From assembly GCA_038496445.1 (NCBI GenBank), contig JALMLS010000353.1, forward strand, positions 62,001 through 126,000: DNA of 64,000 nt, given 5' to 3'. How positions within the stretch are numbered: position 1 is the stretch's first letter; the number at the start of each line of letters is the position of its first letter. Below are positions 11,813-56,501 of the stretch, piece by piece. A program made the translations under genes and the position numbers. Source of the stretch: Trichosphaerium sp. ATCC 40318 (Eukaryota; Protista; Tubulinea). The notes under the pieces are model-generated. The model did not search any database and was not told where the DNA came from. It saw only the letters and a list, made by a program, of their open reading frames with translations.

Positions 11813-12622
11813 ATGAGTACCGTAGACAAACCTAGGCCCACAAGTAATCACCATTCTATGGCCATAATATCACCTTCTAAAAATCATCTTTCGCACCAAA
11901 CAAAGCGCATAGGTGTAAAGAAAGCTAACGCTGGTACGTAGGTTGTATCTCAAGGAAAACTTTTCAAAAAAACTTTTAAAATGTACAATGTAGGCGTGCT
12001 TGGGCTTACTGGGTTCTTCATCGCGTTAAACACCATATCTCTCGTTGATATATTCCGCCCTGAAGCTAAACTTAACACTATATGGTTGCTGCTCACTGTA
12101 TTTGGAGGCGTTCTACAAACAATGGGCGGATTGTTTGACTTTCAGCATGGGAACACTCTCTCATCCATAATTTTCTTAGTTTTTGGCCTTCACTGGGTAG
12201 CTACTGGGATAACAATGGGAAGGATAAAGTTATTAGAACCTGTAGTAGTTGTAGATGATCCTGATGAGTTCGAACTTGGATTCTATTTCATCACGTTAAC
12301 TCTTCTTGTACTTGTTTTTATTGTTTTCGCAATAGCCAATCCTGAAAGCAACTGGTTACTAGTACTGACATTAAGTGTTGTTCTTATAAAGCTTGTCATT
12401 GATACAGTTAATGTTTGGACAAAGAGCACTGTCGTCAAAAGATTAAGTGGGGTATTTGGTGTGATAGCAGCACTTTTAGTTTTGTATACATTACTAGCTG
12501 CAGGTTTGTCAGAGGTAGGTGTCTCACTTCCAACATACAAGTTTCAAAAAGATGGCAGTTCTGTAAGGCGCTTAATACTTAATTGCAGAAGCACTAATGA
12601 CAAACACAAAGGAATAAACTGA
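11813..12622 (+). CDS. GPR1/FUN34/YaaH (SatP) acetate transporter family
   Basis: One intron gives ANAGVLGLTGF (cf. NPAPLGL); FGGVLQ, GNT, FGLHW; about 6 TM segments. Confidence 0.85.
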
Positions 12623-13904: not shown

Positions 13905-13986
13905 ATAAATAATATCACTCACTACCTCATATTGGACTTAAAATCGATAAAATTGAACTATAACTTACAGTTGTATTAAAAGAGAA

Positions 13987-14057
13987 AGCCTCAGGTAGGG
14001 TCGAACCTACAACCTTTAGTTCCGGAAACCACTGCTCTACCATTGAGCTACAAAGGC
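13987..14057 (-). tRNA. tRNA-Arg(CCG)-like, atypical or pseudogene
   Basis: GCCTTTG-TA-GCTC AATGGTA GAGC-A-GTGGT TTCCGGA ACTAA-AGGTT-GTAGG TTCGAC CCTAC-CTGAGGC, followed by a T run. Confidence 0.75.
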
Positions 14058-14633
14058 TTGCTGTTGACTGTAAGACCTGCTGTGTCAGATCGCGCTCGGA
14101 GTATACAAACATTATATAGGACGTGCAACTTGGGATACTAACGCTCAAGCTTCTCTCGGTTTTCGATTTTTATATTGACTTTTTGAAAATATTGAAAATA
14201 AATCTTAAGTTAGAAGTTGTGAGGTTTGTAGTACTGTTCACAGGTGAGTGGTTTATTGTGTTTGTTGACAAAGTAGTGCGTGTGTGATACTCTAAGTATT
14301 GTTTGAAGCGAGCTAGTACGTAATTAGGTTAGTTTAACACCTTTTAAGGATTGGTTTCACTGTACATACCACGTCATCTTGACAATATACTGTAATTGCG
14401 AGAACAAATAATGTAAGAAAGTGTAGTAACATTGGTGATTGCGTAGATGACTTTAAGGTTCTGCGAGCTTAACCAGCTGTTTAGGCACAATTAGAAAAAC
14501 AAAAGTCACTTTTCACATTAAAAACTTGCTTGGTCCCACAAGAAGTACAACAATATGTTGCAAGAGCAAAAAAAGGCTTCTTTTCAACATTAAAGTGCTG
14601 GGTCACGTGTTTTCAAACAGTTATTACTTTATA

Positions 14634-26811: not shown

Positions 26812-29800
26812 TCATTCAAAATTTACAATTGCAATTTTCTCTAGCTTTTTATGAGCCATAGCATCTAATCTACACAAGATAATTTTCTCTTTTTCAAGCT
26901 CAGGTCGACCAAAATTAGTGTAAATGTTGACTTTAACCTAAAATAAACATGTTAAGATTAAAATCGGAAAAAAAATCAAAGCTCAACCAAATATGTGAAC
27001 GCAGTCAAGTTGTACGTACTGTAATGCCATCAGTGAGAACTCTTTTTCCTGGAGAGAATAGACGAACGGAAATTGTATAGTCACCAGCCAAGGCTTCCCT
27101 TACCTACGCAAATAAAGTTAAACCCAAAATCCTATTGGTATGTTTTATTCACATACTGTATACTCAACAGGTCCATATCCTTGTGAAAAATCTCTTGATA
27201 GCATACCCCCGTTCTTTGTTGTGTTATTGAACGAATGACATTGTGTACCATCAGGCTAAAAATTAAGCAAGTAAGTAAAATGAGAAAAATATGAGAATTT
27301 GTTTTATTCTTACCTCTGTTATGAATAGCTCTACATCTGTCATATCTGTATCCCAAGTACATACAACACGCATATCAACGTTAAGAGGATTAGAAAGAAG
27401 AACATTAACATAATCAGGTAAGTTCTGTAGACGAAGTCCATGACATTTTTGAGCAATACTACACATATCCATCATACAAACCATCTCAACTTGACTAACA
27501 ACAGTAGTTAGTAAGAAACGAATAACATTATTTTAAACTCGTAAAACAAGGATTGCTTTGTCAAAAAGAAGATTTGTTTGTGGCCGTACTTGAAGCGTTC
27601 ATCCCATTTCTTTGTAACAATTTTTGATAATTCTTCTGTCGCTTCAAAATAAAGTCCTTTACGTGCTAGTGCATGTGAAAGGTCTCTGTGATTTTGAGGT
27701 TCTTCTGGACGCATTTCACACAGTCTCTTATACATGTGAATAGCTTCATCATTTTCACCATAAGCCTCAAGCAAGTATGCCATCATCCTGTACAAACAAA
27801 AAATGAGTACCAGACCTTTTTGTCTTGCGTTTTCTTCGCTCTTTGTATTTTTTTCTTTGTACCTCAAATACTTTGGTTGATCGATAGATATCTCTGCAAG
27901 ATTACTAGCAACGGACAAAGCTTGTTTGTTATAATTTCTTACAAAGCTGAACCAAGCAAGGTCAAAAGCAGTATTTACATCATATCTCATTGTAGCAATT
28001 TCGTTCTTCTGGTACAAGTTGAGAATACTACTCTCAGATGCCTACAGACTTTAGCCAAACTAATCAAACAACAAAACAAAGAAGTATTATTAGCTTGAAT
28101 AAAGACATGTGCGTACATTTGGTTGAAGTTGTTTAACATACTTTGAAGACATGTAATGTTCACAAACTTCTACAGTAAGTTTTCTTTGTTTTTTAGCTTT
28201 CATTGGTCCTTGAATGTATATGAAGGTCTATTCATAACATAGTAAGCAAAAAAGAGTGAGAGTATTAAACAACGTACATGTCTCTTTGTACTTAAACTCT
28301 CATGATTGTTTGAAACTTCGTCAGTAACACCCGAAATAGTTAAAGTCTGCGACATGTCTTTTAAGCTGTATCCTGTAAAGTCTAAGTAAAACAACACTGG
28401 TGCCTAATTATTGTTCTGGTACCTCTCGCAGCAAGTTCATAAGGTTCATAGTTGTCACTTGTAGGAGCTGGGGCAATGTACTTCTATAAATAATAGTCAA
28501 CAAAAACAGATTAAAAATTGTGATTGTCGTACATGATGCTCTGTACCAGAATGACGAGATTGGCTAATGTAATTAATTACTTAATTTGTTGTTAATAGGT
28601 ATTACGAACCGATAAGGAGGAGTGGTATTCTGGTAAGCATTTAAATTTGAGCTAAAATGAACAATACTTCTCATGTATGACTTTCTCCATATAAGAACAC
28701 CAACAAACAACCCACCAAGAACACCTATGACTACAGCGCCAATAGCAACGTCTATTTAAAAAATCCAAGTTAACTATCATTGGGTAATAATAGCTTGTGG
28801 TAACGCACAATAAGTCCATCCAAGTATCCACCAGAATAACCAAGAAGAAAAAGATACAACAGAAGAGAAGCTTGGAATCAGGTTCCATAAAAACAATATT
28901 GCATTGTACTGCCATCCAAAAGTATACTTCCAGGGTAATAGATACACTATTAATCCAACAGCAAAGAACATAATAATCCAAAAAACAAAAGAAAAAGAGG
29001 ATTGGCTTTTACGAGTTTTGTAATATCTTGGATCCATATTATCTAAAAAAATAAGAAAAATGTGAGAATTCAAACTTCTCTTGGAACAGTTGCCGTACAT
29101 CCTACAGTAGGTACTGGTTCATAAGATGCTGAACCCATTTTCATTTTTCTTGACTTCTTCTTGTACAAGGTGCGTGGTATATAATTAACAGAGCTTGATA
29201 CAGCTCCAGCAACATTACTGATTGCTCCACCAATTGCAGCTCCAACAGCACCTACCCACCTTCTTCTTCTCAGACGATTAGACTGTTTGCGAAACCTAAG
29301 ACTTGAAGACTGAAGGCTTTCGCTCTGAGCAACCAAGTCTTCTAAACGCTCTCCACGTTCCACAATCTTGTCTATACTTTGAACCATCTTAAAAATTTGT
29401 TAGTACACTTAGCTTAGATACTGAAAAGTTGTACCACTTCTTTAACATGTTCTATATTTGATTCAACATCAGCAATTTTGCTGTATTGTCTCCTACGTGG
29501 GCGCAATTTTGCTGCTCCCTTGCGACTGACTCGCTTCTTCTGTTTCCCTCCTCTAGTAGGTTTGTTTGATTTCTTTGGTGGAGGTGGTATGGCTGCACAG
29601 TCTTGGTCTCCTCCCCAGCCACCTGGTGCTGCAGAATAGGGCGTGGTCTGTGTTTTTAATCTTGACGATCGCCTAGGTGCAGGACAAGCTTGTGGTGCTG
29701 TTGTTGGTATCATAGATTTTCCTGCCGGTGGTGCTTGTGCACTTGAGAAAAGACTAGATACTCTTCCCAACATACTTTGGTTTTCGTTACTCATATATTT

Positions 29801-32800
29801 TAACAGGCTAGCATCAGCTTCTTCTGGTGCGATTTCTGGTTCTGGTTCTGGGAGTGGTGCCATATCACCATCATATAACCCGTCCTTTTCATCAATATCA
29901 TTCAGTGCCGTACTAATATCAGAACGACTATCTAATTCATCTGTCGGCGGTACATCATACATTTCACCGCCCAGTTCCTGCAAACAATCTTCCGTATTTT
30001 CATACTGTATCTTTGACTGTTCAATTGGGAGCGATTGTGATTGATCATTAAAGGTACCAAAGTCATCACTGTCATCATCAAAGAGCGATAAACCTGCTCC
30101 ACCTTCACCTTCACACTCAGAAGAATCTCTGCTATTAAAATCTGAAACAGGAGCTGGAACAGAAGCTGCAGCTAGAGATGTTGGAAAACTGGTTGGTAGG
30201 CTTGTTCGAGGGCGATATTCATCTCTAATGCCACCCAATAATGAAAGGCGCCTTTTTCCATCAGCTTTTTTTTCTCGTGCGTTGTTTAAAACAGGAGGCG
30301 GAGCAGGAGCTCCAGATGTCGGATAAATACTTGGTTTTTTAGGTATAGGGGCGTCGTCATCATCGTCATCATCGCCATCATCTCTATCATCGCTATCATC
30401 ACTACCATCGTCACCAAAGAAGGAGAATCCCATCTCACTGTCGGAATCAGTGTCACTTACTTCAGCAAAAGGATCAGGAGCTGCTGCGGCGGCGGCTACT
30501 GGTATTTCGTTTATACCCAATTTGACATCCTCAGGCCAAGTATCGTCAGATCCAAACAAATCAAAGCCCATATCTTCATCATCTTCTTCCTCTTGTTCGT
30601 CTTCATTATCAAAAAGATGTACTGGTAATTGTTGTTGTTGTTTTCTGTCGCTGACTACTAACTTGCTGATGTCTGGAGTGATTCGTTTCAGTTTCTTATC
30701 TGATTTCTTTCCTTTTTTTCCTTTTATTTTCTTTTCGACATCTGGAGTATCCTCTTTATCACGTGAAGATCTACGATTTCTTCGAACACTTAAAGGAGCA
30801 TCAGCTAATTTCACGCGCTTTTGTCTTTCAAGCTTCATCACCTCCTTCTAAGAACTAGGTGAGCAACACACAATGTTGTAAACAATAATATAGTACCATC
30901 TTTGTTTGAAGCTGAGTTGGTTTTGTATCTTCGATAGGTTCAGCTTCATTATGGCTCACCAAGTCAAGGTTGTCAAAGTCAAATTCGAAAGGACTGAATT
31001 CAAGCTCTTTTTGATTTTTTTCTTCACGTGGTACTGTTTGGTATTCCGAAACACGTTTCTCGAAAAAATTTGTAGACCCAGCAACGAACTTACTCTTTTT
31101 AAACTGAAGAGGAACATCAGCAATCTTGAAAGCTTGATTATAATCTGTTCCTAAACCGTCCATTTGTGTGAATGATTGGAAATGAAGCATTTGGTCCACT
31201 TTATCAAAATCAGACTGCTTGTAGCTCCACCTGTGTTAATGGTTAACGTAGTTGAACATAAACCAAACAATACTCACCATGTTTTTCGCCTTTCCCATAA
31301 ATTGAGAACTCTGTTTAATTTCTCGTATAGTTCGTTCTCTCTATGCTTCATCTTTTCTTCCATAATAGCAGCGTAACTGGAAACAAGATCAGGAAGAGAA
31401 GATGGTGGCTCAATCTCATATCTGATGTACTACACAGAATTAGAAATAGTTATCATTTATTTGTTGTTTTACCTGATCTAGAGTCTCAAGTACGATAAGC
31501 GATGCACCTTCAGTTACCAACGTGAACTCTTTTCCGACTTCCATTATTTTATCCTCTAAAGAATCATCGTCTTTAGCATCCAAAGTCAATTCTTCTATCT
31601 TCCTCTATTGAACAAAGTCAAAAAAGATATACATCATGTTGGGTAAAAGACTTACTTGAGCCCAGAATCTTGGCGCTAATCTGTCGTGATCTAATGAATC
31701 ACATAAAGGTAAATCGAATGTTACTGACTTTATAACTTCTCGCGAGGTAAAGTATCCATAATTGAGCTTGATTTTAACTGATTTGATAGCTTTTTTTGTT
31801 ATTGCTTTGGTATTTAATTTTGCTGAGATTTTAAAGTTTGATGTAATAGGTGTTCTTGCTGAAGGATATATCTATTACAAGTTATTCTGGGTTTACTTCT
31901 AAAGCCCTTTTACCTCTTCTATTATGTCTTTAGGATATTCAGCATACAAGAAACCAAACGTAGGTCGTGTCAAAATTGATGCAAAAGACGCTACGTTATA
32001 AGACTCATTCAAATTAAAAAATGATCCTCCGCTCTTTCTTGACCATAACCTTACTTTTGTTTAGATCCTGTAACATAATGAAATAATTGACGTACTTCAG
32101 TAGGGTGAAATTGGACTGTACAGATGCGCTGAAGAAGTGCACGGGAACTGAAAGAATAAGTACGGCCGCCAGTAAAATCGCTCCAACTCACCTTCAAACT
32201 TTGGCATTTCCTTAGATCCAACTGTATCCATCCCGTTTGTAAACGCCATGAAGAAATCGTATGCTTCGCCACTCGGCCCTTTAGCAGGAGCCTTTAGGAG
32301 ACTCATATTGGTACCTGAATAAAGGTTGGTAATTGTACAAAAAAAATAGCAAAGTACCGCCATCATAATGAAGAGTCCTTAGATACTGTATAAGATCACG
32401 TGTATTCTTTGAAGAAAACTTCTTTGGTGAAGTATCCATTGAAAATCCAAAAGAGTAAAGATGAATATTAAATGGATTAGAGCGAGATAATTGATCTACA
32501 ATTTTTCCTAGGGCTGTGAACGTTTTATCATCTTTTTGACTGCGAGACCTACAAACATACTACGTAAAAACAAACAGCATAAAACGGCTTGTACCTGTCC
32601 CAGTAAATGCCTACAGTTGAGAGTTTTCTTTGACGAGATGCGGAAGTTTTATGTTCGATATTATCACTGATGGCGAAGTAAGTGCCTACAAAGGTTAGTA
32701 AGGCGAACAAAACCAAAATATGGTTCAAAAAAAAAGTACCATCTTTGTGATATCCCGACGCAATGTGCGCTTGTGAATTGTTTTGATGACAAGGTATGAA

Positions 32801-33865
32801 CAAGGTCAAATCTTCATTTAGTTTCTGATTTTCACACGTGGCTTTAACAATTGTACATGTACGAGAACCAGAAATAATACATTTCTTAGAAAATGTGCCA
32901 TTACTCTTCACAATTGGAGTGCCAACCACTGTATCACATAGAATTTTAACCTTTATCAACGTGTCAATATTATCAAGCAAATAGCCAAGGAGTATCCGTA
33001 CGTTTAAGTCACATGTACGTGGTTTGCCATTAACGTTTAGCGGTAATTTGTATGTGTAGCCGTTATTAGCGTAAGGCAAATCGAGTGTATAGTGAACACG
33101 GACTGTTCGATATCCATTCGCAGGCACCGGATATACACGTGTTTTGAAGACATTACCTGCCTAATATTAAATAATAAGTACAGACTTGTCATCCAAAAGA
33201 ACAATAATCACGTGTCAAAAAAGTTTCTGTGTTTACACATACCACTTTCTCAATAATTGCAGGCCCACGTCTCTCATGGCGCACCTCTGTCTCAAAAGCA
33301 ACCCTAAAGAAGAGTAATCAAAAACAAGAAATAGTGCTGACGTTGACAAAAAAGGAAGAGGTGTAGATAAGGCACAGTTCTGTTACGTAACGTAAAATCA
33401 AAAAAAGAAAAAACACAAAACATTGCAGTTTTTATTTGAAAGTCGGCAGTACTTCTGCTGTCTAGGTGTTAGTTTTCGTACCTCGCTTTCTCTTTAGGGC
33501 ATATTACGCCTGGAACCATTTTACCGTTGACATCAATAGCGTATCCACAAACGCTGCTATCTAGTTTGCATTAGCGCTTATATAGCACTTAGGGCATTAA
33601 AGCGCTTCTAGAAGTACCTTCAGGCAAAGGCATAACAAGTTCGGCTTCAACGTCTTTCTTGCTATCGTTACGCCATTTCATTGTAAGTATAGTCTCTGTA
33701 TGCAGTTTTTAGCTTAAAACAGCACAATACATTTTAAACGCATAAAAAGAAACAAAATTAGTTAATCGTACCTGAGAGGAATTTGTTGACATTTGCTTGT
33801 ACATGTAGGCTGTCAAGGGCAAGTTTTGTACTTGTACCCTTAACAACTAACTCCAGCGTAGTCAT
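26812..33865 (-). CDS. VIT - vWA-like - long variable linker (with TM segments) - TPR - DUF2135/YfaP-like protein
   Basis: VIT: EAELVMPLP, GYAIDVNGKMVPGV, KARVAFETEVR…GP, FKTRVYPVPANGYRTVRV. Then GIYWD, FTNGMDT, RFWAQ, SLIVLETLDQYIRYEIEPP, WERRKTWW. C-terminus: RPEEPQNHRDL, DMRVVCTWDTDMTDVEL, SRDFSQGYGPVEY. Confidence 0.85.
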
Positions 33866-34276: not shown

Positions 34277-35044
34277 TTAGTTTTTAGAAACAGCGTCAGA
34301 AAGCCATTTAAGAGCTTCAAATAAATTATCACCCGTTGTGCATGAAGTGCCAATTATATGGGACTTTGGAGATGGTAATGCAGCCATGCCTATTTCATCT
34401 TTAACCTCTTCTACAGACATTGCTTCTTTCAAATCCTACAAAGTTCATTAAATGTCTTTGTAACAATCTCATTTGACAGCACCATCTTGTTTGCCAATAC
34501 AAGCACCACAGCATCTTTAAGCTCTTCTGCTCGTGTGAGTAGTTGTAGCTCAAGTGCAGCTTCATATTGTTGTCAGTAAGCTAGGCAAGGCGCATCACAG
34601 TTTACCTTTCTCCATTGATTCACGGTCAGTTGCATCAACAACAAATATTATAGCCTTTGCTCTACAGTAAGTAAGTACCAACTGTAGGCAATATATGACG
34701 TGTACCCTTTATAGTAGTGTTTATACAACAGCCTGAATTTCTCATCCAGTCCAAGTGTGAAACTGTTAAACGTTATTCTTTGAAGCATACCAAACACAAT
34801 ATGTTTGAGGGTACGTAATAAACTGCAGGTTCTTGTAATTGTTCTCTTGTACATTCAGGCCTGTATTTGGTATAAGTGCTAACTCGTTAAAACTTGTTTA
34901 GGGACCTATTGTTGGAATTGTAGTTATTGTATTCCCTAGGCGTAGTTTAAATATGAAACTGGTTTTTCCAGCGCCAGATAGGCCCAATAACAAAATGCGG
35001 ATAGTTTCTTGCTCAGGACTAAAGAATTTCACTGCGTTTCCCAT
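34277..35044 (-). CDS. ARF-family small GTPase with degenerate G3 motif
   Basis: MGN myristoylation start, [38 protein letters not shown]; FTLGLD replaces WDVGGQ. Confidence 0.85.
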
Positions 35045-49782: not shown

Positions 49783-51546
49783 TTAAGCCCCAATTTTTCT
49801 TAGTACAATACCATAAGGCCTAACATACTTTGTTTCATCTACAACTATCCATGTTTGCCCGTTACCTGTTTCCCAAACATGATCTGGGTGAACCCTACAT
49901 TGAAAAGCGACTTCATAAGTAGCACCACCAAACGAAATTGGAGCTTTGTAGCATTGCTCAACATCACGAGCAAAATAGATTCCCTTCGCAGGAATAGGAC
50001 CTTTACCATTAGTTGATTGTTTTTTGCCGTAAGCATTGGCGGATCCTGGAACAACCTGACGAGATTGAGCAATGCCTGAAAAAAGTTAAGTAGCAGAAAA
50101 AAACAAATTAAAAAAATAGTCTTGCGCACCTTTTGCTGACGTTAGATTTCCGTTTGGTCCATGAAAAGCTGCTACCCATTCACCAGGTGAGTTATTCATA
50201 GATATCCAACTGTTGTCCTCGTACAGGCCTAATACCCTCAAACCATACCTATAGTGTGTCAACGACATTTGTAAGTTTTAATTGTATGTTAAAGGAACCT
50301 TTTCCATTGGCTTGAAGGTTGGTAGTAAATACTATTTCCGCGTTTTTGCTTATCGCCATTGGCACAAGGAAATTGAATATCTCCACGCTCATCAAAATCA
50401 CCAGGAGAGAGCTTTAAAGTGTCCATCACAGCTTTTAATTCAAGCGAAATATTTTTGAAAGCTGTCGGATATTTTGTTGTGAAGTGAGCTGAGAGCCGTT
50501 GCTTCTTACTAAGAATAGCTTGGGATGTGTCAATATCACTGGGGCTTAGTCTTTGTAGGACTGCTGCAGGTATAATGGCTTGTAACTTGACCGAACCATG
50601 CTTCATACCAAGGATGATGACTTGCTCCATTGGAATACTTAGAGCCTTTGAGATTTCTTCGCGAACTTCGAGTTCTTTTTCTCTTTGTAATTCCGGTTCA
50701 TTCTTGAGGTCACTGAATGTTTTACCATTCAAAAATTCTTGTTCGTAGAATGAAAGCTCTAGTACACAAGCGTCAGAAGGTCTAGAGCTGATGATTTGAA
50801 TGTTTGATTTCTTCTTTTCTTCAATGTTAAAATCGACGCCACATTCTTCGAAAGCTGATGTTAGAACACTCGTCAATGTCTTTAATTCCTCGTTTCTTTG
50901 AGTGTCTTTGTCATCGAATACTTTCTTTTCGATTTCAGATAGCTTTTGTTCCGTTGTTACAACCGCCTTCTTGTCAGCATCTTTCAAACCGTCGACATAA
51001 AAACTGCGTAATTCCGTGTTCAGACGTTCAGCTATTTCGAAGTCGTTACCAAACCTCTCCTTCTCTTCTTCGCTCACTGTTACCACTTCCTTATCGTTAA
51101 AGTCAATGTATTCTTCTTTTTCACTGTACGAATTGATAATGCTTTTTGTCAGCACGTCGCTGAGACCTTGAAAAGACGGTCAACTCTAAGACATCGTGTT
51201 TAACTTTTTTAGCGACGTTACCTAGTTTAACAAAATTACAAGCTCCTCTTCTCATGTTAACAGTTTTACAAGAGTCATCACACAGTAATCTACCATCTAC
51301 AAGAAACTGGTAATAGTAAGTTCCTGGCTGGAGTTCTACAGTTCCTTCAAATGAACCGTCAGAATTTTGCTCCAATTCCATTGGCATTTCCCAGTTATGC
51401 CATGACCCTATGACTGACGCTGTACTCCCATTGTGAGTCCACCGAAAACCTAACGTAGTATGTAAGCTTTTTTGGCCACAACAGCATTTCAGGGTGACAT
51501 ACGGAGAGTTGTTGTCATAGTTGTTGGATATTGTTAAGTTGGTCAT
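49783..51546 (-). CDS. CBM48 (AMPK-beta-type glycogen-binding) + SEA-like + NEURL4/Gig2-like ADP-ribosyltransferase-fold protein
   Basis: FRW…VIGSWHNW…LQPGTYYYQFLVDG; GMKHGSVKLQ; RGNSIYYQPSSQWKRYGLRV…W…AFHG…GIYF…FQCRVHP…VRPYGIVLRK. An intron at ~51171-51222 joins the two ORFs. Confidence 0.7.
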
Positions 51547-55207: not shown

Positions 55208-55822
55208 TTATATCTGTACAACCCCACGATCAACTAGTTCGCCAACTTCATTCCAATTCTTGTACTCGCCCTTTAGTTTATCATCAACATAACAACACTT
55301 TCTACGCAACTGTCCATTACAAAACCACATCTTTAGCTCTCCTTCTAATTTACCTTTTACATAGTTATGCTCTTCCCATATTTTACCATTACTATGCCAT
55401 TGCTTAAACACTCCTTCAAGCTTACCATCAACAAAGTTAAAATGTCGATGTAATTGACCATCTTCATACCAATACTTAACATCTCCTTCAAGTCTACCAT
55501 CGACATAAAATTGCTTCCTTTGTAGCTGCCCATTATTATGCCAATTTCTAAAATCACCATGACGCTTACCATGTCTCCAGTACTCTCTACAAACAATCTG
55601 TGATACTGAAACACCATCGAGAGAATCTCGTTGACTTGTGGTTCTCCTTTTTTGCCATTTACCATGCTTGTTAAACTCTCTATCAAATCTTGTTATAGTT
55701 GCCGTTTGTTTACATAACAGAGGCATCGCGAAATACGCGTCAAAGTCTAAATCGGCGATGACAAGTTGTAGCTCTTTCGGAAGCGTAAAGAAGTGGCAAC
55801 AACATGATTGTTTGGTGCTCAT
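55208..55822 (-). CDS. F-box-like + MORN-variant repeat protein, intronless
   Basis: First ATG at 55822; FTLPKELQLVI; four to five G..EG..K.W..NGQL repeats. Confidence 0.8.
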   Translation of the reverse strand: MSTKQSCCCHFFTLPKELQLVIADLDFDAYFAMPLLCKQTATITRFDREFNKHGKWQKRRTTSQRDSLDGVSVSQIVCREYWRHGKRHGDFRNWHNNGQLQRKQFYVDGRLEGDVKYWYEDGQLHRHFNFVDGKLEGVFKQWHSNGKIWEEHNYVKGKLEGELKMWFCNGQLRRKCCYVDDKLKGEYKNWNEVGELVDRGVVQI

Positions 55823-56501
55823 GCTTCTATTTTCCGTACGTTGTAGCGTTGTAGCGTATTTAGAACGCTTGGGAGCAGTAATACTGTTTGATTTGTTGTC
55901 AATCGTGTAAAGTCGCCCAGTTGTACTCAAGATACACCAACAATATCACCACGCGAGAAAAAGAGTCACGGGTTTGTAGAGTACTAGATTGTGGTACATA
56001 CCATTAATACCATCAGATTTATATCGTATCCACGAGAAATCTAACGGAAATCTCATACAATTTCATATTTTTTACTGAGATAGTTTCAGGACTTGCTAAT
56101 GAATGTGTTAACACTGAACTTTCGAAGCTTAATGCTGCCACAAAAAGGGGGGAAATAGTATACAGTTGTTGCGTACCTCTCACGTGAGAAGAAACCAAAG
56201 CAAAGTTAAATACGTCATAACTATCAAAACAACAGACTTAGTGAGATTACACGATTTCTGTAATGATATATAACAAAAAGAAAGGTCAAGAACTCTGCAT
56301 TGTTTTATACGTTTACTGAACTCATAGTGTTAAGTTCAACGTGATATTTGAATTTCTACTTTCGCAGTATTTTTGTGATACTAGCATTTGATCAAACATG
56401 TAGGTAATGCAACGAGCTAAAATACCTGACTACTTCAATAGAATCTTGTTGACCAACGTGTTTATGCCTGTTATTCAAATACAGTTATTTTGGTACATAC
56501 A

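Follow-up and report, generated by a model that had tools for sequence, protein, structure and literature searches.

We analysed a stretch of 64,000 nucleotides (nt) from Trichosphaerium sp. ATCC 40318 (contig JALMLS010000353.1, positions 62,001 to 126,000), hereafter the window, in which an earlier note made from the sequence alone had placed the C-terminal tail of the small subunit (R2) of class Ia ribonucleotide reductase (RNR) within a protein carrying a VIT domain. The DNA of the window is eukaryote-like, with 37% G+C and short GT..AG introns. A gene of the VIT/vWA/DUF2135 family lies here on the minus strand, and one of its internal coding exons holds a segment of 35 codons that descends from the 3' terminus of a class Ia R2 gene of eukaryote type and is predicted to be read in frame. 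The exon, its introns and the parts of the segment are as follows (positions are those of the window).

30897..31230, minus strand: internal coding exon of 334 nt, entry phase 2, exit phase 0; bounded within a stop-free stretch by AG at 31232-31231 and GT at 30896-30895
31231..31277, minus strand: upstream intron of 47 nt, GTGAGT..CAG, from splice signals
30848..30896, minus strand: downstream intron of 49 nt, GTACTA..TAG, from splice signals
30975..31079, minus strand: R2-tail-like segment, 35 codons (exon residues 51-85), from translation, PDB matches and tblastn
31038..31079, minus strand: core of the segment, 14 codons, G-S-TNFFEKRVSEYQ, 13/14 identical to R2
31041..31043, minus strand: Tyr codon (exon residue 63), equivalent of the radical-transfer Tyr of the R2 tail
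30975..30989, minus strand: F-E-F-D-F, a hydrophobic-x-x-acid-Phe motif that resembles the last five residues of R2 and is internal here

The segment matches the C-terminal tail of R2

Translation of the minus strand from 31079 to 30975 gave exactly the 35 residues quoted in the earlier note, and the plus strand at the same coordinates encodes nothing resembling this peptide. When the exon was compared by phmmer with the PDB (a library of 177,635 distinct sequences), all eight matches at E<=10 were RNR small subunits, aligned at their C-terminal ends. The top match was yeast Rnr2 (E=3.9e-4, residues 344-396 of 399), and the others were mouse R2, human p53R2, human R2, yeast Rnr4 and Plasmodium R2. 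Among 185,579 prokaryotic genomes, one per species, a pattern scan returned 52 confirmed loci, every one of which was the 3' end of an R2 (nrdB) open reading frame (ORF) of 323-396 aa. These loci were mostly from Flavobacteriaceae, with others from Saprospiraceae, one Chlamydiales and one Woesearchaeota genome.

We compared five full-length R2s with the whole window by tblastn, and only R2 residues ~253-329 aligned, at 31205..30975; the alignment of one bacterial R2 (L001) stops on the last residue of that R2, at window position 30975. No match to the di-iron part of R2 was found anywhere in the 64 kb (best other match E=0.2), as the earlier note had claimed, and the window holds neither a second copy of the segment nor an R2 gene. 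Pfam and NCBIfam searches of the exon matched no family. The translation, the PDB matches and tblastn thus agree with the assignment of 30975-31079 to an R2 tail. The captured piece is ~35-45 codons long, essentially the span boxed in the earlier note. It is not itself an R2, since three of the four defining features of an R2 fail here, and it cannot serve as an enzyme subunit because the metal/radical domain is absent.

The tails of many Bacteroidota R2s (L001-L048), of a Chlamydiales R2 (L049) and of an R2 from a Woesearchaeota metagenome-assembled genome (L009) carry a 12-mer identical to that of eukaryotic R2s. These proteins end in F-D-x-D-F-like motifs and, by tail sequence alone, are not separable from eukaryotic R2. 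An attempt to place the donor lineage of the tail gave no assignment, as bacterial R2s (19-26 bits) and eukaryotic R2s (20-25 bits) score alike.

Extent of the similarity to R2

At 13 of the 14 positions strongly conserved in R2, among them the Glu that precedes the Tyr by six residues, the core (exon residues 51-64) has the R2 residue. In an alignment of the exon with seven R2s from the prokaryotic loci, G51 and T53-Y63 are invariant, and the 12-mer from T to Q of the core is repeated in human p53R2 (chain 3hf1_A) as 12 consecutive identities. The close match to the class Ia R2 terminus that had been noted from the letters alone is therefore borne out by the core and by the PDB matches, all of which are R2 C-termini. 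The segment had also been said to hold the radical-transfer Tyr, and Tyr 63 of the exon indeed aligns with residue 370 (Y370) of mouse R2 chain 1h0n_A; a role in radical transfer has been described for the equivalent Tyr, Y356, of E. coli (PMC11482829).

Downstream of the core, the exon contains exactly one hydrophobic-x-x-acid-Phe motif. Of 50 R2 C-termini, all end in Phe and 39 end in hydrophobic-x-x-acid-Phe. The distance from the Tyr to the end is 14-24 residues in R2s (mode 21) and 22 in the exon. Upstream of the core, the 50 residues of the exon keep 4 of 24 strongly conserved R2 columns, and the last helix of the R2 fold, which precedes the tail in R2, is not recognisable in the exon by a profile and shuffle test. 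Beyond the 14-residue core the similarity to R2 is by itself not significant, and as judged from these comparisons only the core is demonstrably R2-derived. We considered and dropped an argument for selection in which the helix had decayed and the tail had been kept, as the upstream 50 residues are not demonstrably derived from R2.

The exon is predicted to be coding and in frame

The stop-free stretch around the segment is 126 codons long. The upstream intron joins the exon, in phase 2, to the preceding exon 31429..31278, and the downstream intron opens in phase 0 straight into a stop-free stretch of 477 codons. Skipping of the exon would break the frame, because 334 nt is not a multiple of 3, and would put the VIT half of the gene out of frame with a linker exon of 471 codons. 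An alternative donor, GTGAGC at 30959 (30959..30954, minus strand), would end the exon at 30960 in the same phase, and the R2-like piece stays in the exon with either donor. This strong alternative donor lies just past the R2-like end motif and differs little from the real donor that ends the preceding exon, the two forming a 10-nt direct repeat. We examined the flanking repeats as marks of an insertion and rejected them, as they are short and at chance level; they exposed the one alternative donor only.

G+C content, overall and at third codon positions (GC3), is the same in the exon as in neighbouring exons, which made a test for foreign composition uninformative. On its own the exon has no fold in an AlphaFold prediction from the single sequence, which was of low confidence (predicted local distance difference test 54, predicted template modelling score 0.14).

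The exon lies in a gene of the VIT/vWA/DUF2135 family

The spliced gene model was searched exon by exon and compared with 120 family proteins. A metagenome scan with a VIT exon led to an intronless bacterial-type ORF of 1078 aa (L055) with VIT, TPR, DUF2135 and LysM, which served as a further query. Two conserved parts of the gene were delimited in this way.

31278..33865, minus strand: N-terminal half with ATG at 33865, VIT exons, a diverged vWA-like region and the conserved exons 31604..31473 and 31429..31278, from Pfam, tblastn and blastp (115-120 of 120 family proteins)
27154..27921, minus strand: C-terminal half, TPR and DUF2135-like, from tblastn of L055 (E=3e-17), Pfam TPR_14 and matches in 114-115 of 120 family proteins

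Matches to Pfam VIT (PF08487) lie on two consecutive exons and cover its positions 16-43 (E=9e-3) and 42-70 (E=5e-4); the VIT exons are matched by 97-120 of the 120 family proteins. The conserved exons of both halves are matched collinearly by 114-120 of them. The vWA-like region carries a D-x-S-x-S motif, has no Pfam or PDB match exon by exon and is matched by only 1-7 of the family proteins. In tblastn, L055 residues 66-564 align with 33705..31373 and residues 773-950 with 27921..27154 on the same strand, and the two conserved halves of the family lie 3.4 kb apart on that strand. The earlier note's statement that the tail is embedded in a VIT protein is upheld by these matches together with the in-frame coding exon, whose phases fit those of its neighbours.

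Every source-named member of the 120 listed family proteins is bacterial (Victivallales, Lentisphaeria, Planctomycetota, Chthoniobacteraceae and others), yet the gene described here carries spliceosomal-type introns of ~43-50 nt and, by reading, no evident signal peptide. This suggests that the host gene is an old bacterial transfer into this eukaryote.

The linker between the two halves spans 105-993 residues across the family, with a median of 150. The R2-like exon begins exactly where the conserved N-terminal half ends, which is the start of this variable low-complexity linker. We asked whether the first residues of the exon could continue the conserved block of the VIT family and rejected this, as the exon gave no match to a profile of that part of the family. 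None of the 120 listed family proteins has the R2-like exon, the R2 motif, or the acidic stretch and SNARE exon described below.

The linker leads to an R-SNARE motif

Downstream of the R2-like exon, on the same strand, lie the following features.

29435..30847, minus strand: acidic/basic low-complexity linker exon, 471 codons, the last ~17 of which start the SNARE motif by reading
29388..29434, minus strand: intron before the SNARE exon, 47 nt
29259..29387, minus strand: R-SNARE (synaptobrevin) motif exon, PF00957, E=2.1e-13, 50.3 bits against a cut-off of 26.4
28573..29258, minus strand: 3' region with three alternative hydrophobic anchor segments by splice choice, read by eye

The linker matches no Pfam family, and a word search with the 477-residue stretch, in which the length limits of the tool exclude full-length kin, gave no relatives. 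Several short Phe-rich acidic motifs occur in the linker (D/E-rich runs containing F-x-x-F, and a single D-F-G-x-F-like site) and are similar to linear motifs that adaptor or ear domains bind; a tandem repeat of 18 nt at 30354-30410 encodes an Asp-rich run. Along the locus, the R-SNARE motif follows the acidic linker and is flanked by the VIT and TPR/DUF2135 halves of the gene. Within the 3' region, 28751..28573 on the minus strand is a strong candidate for a transmembrane exon. A limited literature search found no description of a VIT-SNARE or VIT/vWA-SNARE fusion.

A chain of exons from the SNARE exon to the TPR exon had no path under strict settings and trivial paths under loose ones; by eye, an in-frame exon chain can be traced upstream of the TPR/DUF2135 half. 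The locus may be one giant gene, or a VIT...SNARE gene followed by a separate TPR/DUF2135 gene. In every gene model that we built, the R2-like piece is predicted to lie inside the VIT protein.

Searches for relatives of the insert

A search of 1.84 billion representative proteins with the exon gave three matches, all of them repeat or low-complexity artefacts, and no true relative; R2s reach ~24 bits against the exon, below the cut-off in this library. A word search with the exon gave no candidates within the length limits of the tool, which exclude full-length kin. None of these searches returned a relative that carries the insert. In a limited literature search, which is not proof, no natural protein with an R2 tail and without the enzyme domain was found described.

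A possible interaction with R1, and its alternatives

C-terminal peptides of R2 have served for decades to compete artificially for the groove of the R1 subunit. The small R1 inhibitors, which include yeast Sml1, fission-yeast Spd1 and their relatives, are not known to be derived from R2, and the known natural inhibitors of R1 are, to our knowledge, unrelated small proteins. Disordered when alone, the R2 tail becomes fully ordered in the active complex and winds into the active site of R1, where it supplies the Tyr and is positioned by a conserved Glu (PMC11482829). R1 is inhibited competitively by the C-terminal seven residues of R2, in line with the earlier note's remark that R2 tail peptides are known RNR inhibitors (PMC3483043). 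The final Asp-Phe and the terminal carboxylate of the R2 peptide bind a basic subsite of yeast R1, with the carboxylate contacting S691, Q692 and K723 through two hydrogen bonds and an ion pair (PMC3483043). An R2 that is catalytically dead but keeps its R1-binding end intact acts as a dominant negative (PMC2900304).

Against this background, our tentative reading, which we hold to be nearly but not quite an even chance, is that the segment would dock onto R1 in competition with genuine R2, damping or tethering RNR. The piece would be exposed and unstructured, a linear motif that shares its side of the membrane anchor with the R-SNARE motif. SNARE topology would place that side in the cytosol, where R1 is active. 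It keeps the Glu and the Tyr, residues that in the holoenzyme lie in the active-site cleft of R1, together with an acidic-aromatic end motif at the right spacing. Given these retained residues, the end motif and the presumed cytosolic side, competitive docking onto R1 would be the likeliest activity, if there is any. The lack of a fold of its own in the exon fits expectation, as the R2 tail is disordered until bound (PMC11482829). The terminal carboxylate that R1 recognises is absent because the end motif is internal, and binding is for this reason expected to be weaker than that of a real R2 tail; the Asp that follows the last Phe might, speculatively, replace the carboxylate in part. In a more specific and rather unlikely form of this reading, a large, membrane-anchored VIT/vWA R-SNARE protein would display the R2 tail as a decoy on its presumed cytosolic side, capturing or inhibiting R1.

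Several results weigh against docking onto R1. The earlier note had described the segment as holding the R1-binding peptide, and this stands only in so far as an R2-like end motif is found at the right distance. The motif is internal, with 26 further exon codons and a long ORF behind it, it is without the terminal carboxylate, and its presence is weakly above chance: in shuffles of the Phe/Asp/Glu-rich stretch, an end motif fell in the allowed range in 7.6% of cases (p about 0.08). Exon residues 1-50 score -1.0 bits against the R2 helix profile, which 973 of 2000 shuffles equal, and recent capture of the tail alone fits the pattern equally well as decay of the helix with the tail kept. No orthologue with the insert is present among the proteins searched and the 120 family members.

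These points are shared in part by the view that the piece is a functionless relic, in which a fragment of an R2 gene or transcript was caught in the tolerant VIT linker (for example as filler DNA or as a duplicated piece of a terminal exon) and is translated without binding R1, its core being intact through recency only. We regard this as quite possible, if somewhat on the improbable side, and only slightly less probable than docking. The linker that houses the insert is 105 to 993 residues long across the family, the insert occurs at this locus alone, similarity to R2 can be demonstrated for the tail only, and the end motif is not at the free C-terminus that R1 recognises. Moreover, its composition is the same as that of the host exons, so nothing dates the capture as old. 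However, the 13/14 match and the absence of any frameshift or stop in the 126-codon open stretch call for either a very recent capture or constraint, and the two elements that contact R1, namely the Glu/Tyr stretch and the end motif, are both present in the piece at their native spacing.

It is improbable that the segment lies outside the mature protein, whether as an intronic remnant of an R2 pseudogene or because the gene model is wrong. The VIT gene could end at the stop at 30857-30855, with the linker and SNARE motif belonging to a separate gene that starts at the in-frame ATG at 30838, or the VIT half could splice past the segment to the TPR/DUF2135 half, which lies 3.4 kb away on the same strand; the 3' part of the locus does allow several splice readings. 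Yet the run of 126 stop-free codons stands in DNA of 63% A+T, the entry phase fits the donor of the preceding family-conserved exon across a canonical 47-nt intron, and the exit phase fits the 477-codon open stretch across one of 49 nt. The gap from the stop to the next ATG would be only 16 nt, against about 410 nt between neighbouring genes, and even in a two-gene model the tail is still inside the VIT protein. That a short acidic/aromatic stretch has come to resemble the R2 tail by chance or convergence is hardly credible. The flanks of the exon and the end motif are not significant alone and the R2 matches fall under the E-value cut-off in the library of 1.84 billion proteins, but all 8 PDB matches and all 52 genome loci are R2 tails in the same register, with E=3e-4 against 177,635 sequences and 12 consecutive identities to human p53R2.

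If the decoy form of the docking reading is true, the segment would be the first natural regulator of R1 derived from R2 itself, and its display at a membrane would tie the supply of deoxynucleoside triphosphates to a membrane compartment. A natural protein with this tail but no catalytic domain would mean that evolution has arrived at the approach of the synthetic peptides, and would open another way of studying how RNR is localised or throttled. Should the piece be inert, it is still a clean case of a very short fragment with a functional motif captured into the disordered linker of a bacterial-looking gene, and such capture bears on how linear motifs are born.

Comparison with known systems

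The segment shares with the tail of class Ia R2 (beta) proteins, such as Rnr2, RRM2, p53R2 and the eukaryote-like NrdB of Bacteroidota and Chlamydiales, the 13/14 core, the Glu, the Tyr and the spacing to the end motif. Unlike in those proteins, the exon is without the di-iron/radical ferritin-like domain, the motif is internal, the gene is unrelated and the preceding helix cannot be recognised. The P7 heptapeptide and its peptidomimetics likewise consist of this part of R2 without the catalytic domain, and compete for the R1 groove (PMC3483043), whereas the segment is natural, lies within a large protein, is much longer by virtue of the Glu/Tyr stretch and is devoid of the terminal carboxylate. 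Should docking onto R1 hold, the protein would, like Sml1 and Spd1, be a disordered polypeptide without catalytic function that binds to R1 and reduces the activity of RNR; no sequence relation to these was found, and none was sought.

The host gene resembles bacterial VIT/vWA/TPR/DUF2135 proteins, among them a 'DUF2135 domain-containing protein' of Victivallales (P0009) and L055, in its collinear exons and in both halves, at 30-65% identity. It differs from the bacterial family in its introns, in the apparent lack of a signal peptide by reading, and in a linker filled by the R2-like piece, the 471-codon acidic stretch and the R-SNARE motif. As in R-SNAREs (PF00957), a SNARE motif above the Pfam cut-off is followed by candidate hydrophobic anchors. 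The N-terminal extension, in contrast, is estimated from exon coordinates at roughly >=1,200 residues and contains VIT/vWA and the R2-like piece, and is thus not of the short or longin type.

Other features of the window

The earlier note had suggested that the R1 concerned might be that of the host or of a giant virus. No viral hallmarks were found among the ten large ORFs of the window that were scanned, and no sign of a giant virus emerged from what was examined. The VIT gene is immediately preceded, ~410 nt from its ATG, by an Arf/Arl-like small GTPase gene with several short introns, as indicated by translation (35044..34277, minus strand). A tRNA-Arg(CCG) at 13986..14058 (minus strand) is the only Rfam or ARAGORN match in the window. 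Three further genes are ordinary cellular genes, encoding a membrane protein of the GPR1/FUN34/YaaH family (11981..12622, plus strand), a protein with a carbohydrate-binding module of the AMPK-beta type (51546..51121, minus strand) and a MORN-repeat protein (55930..55208, minus strand).

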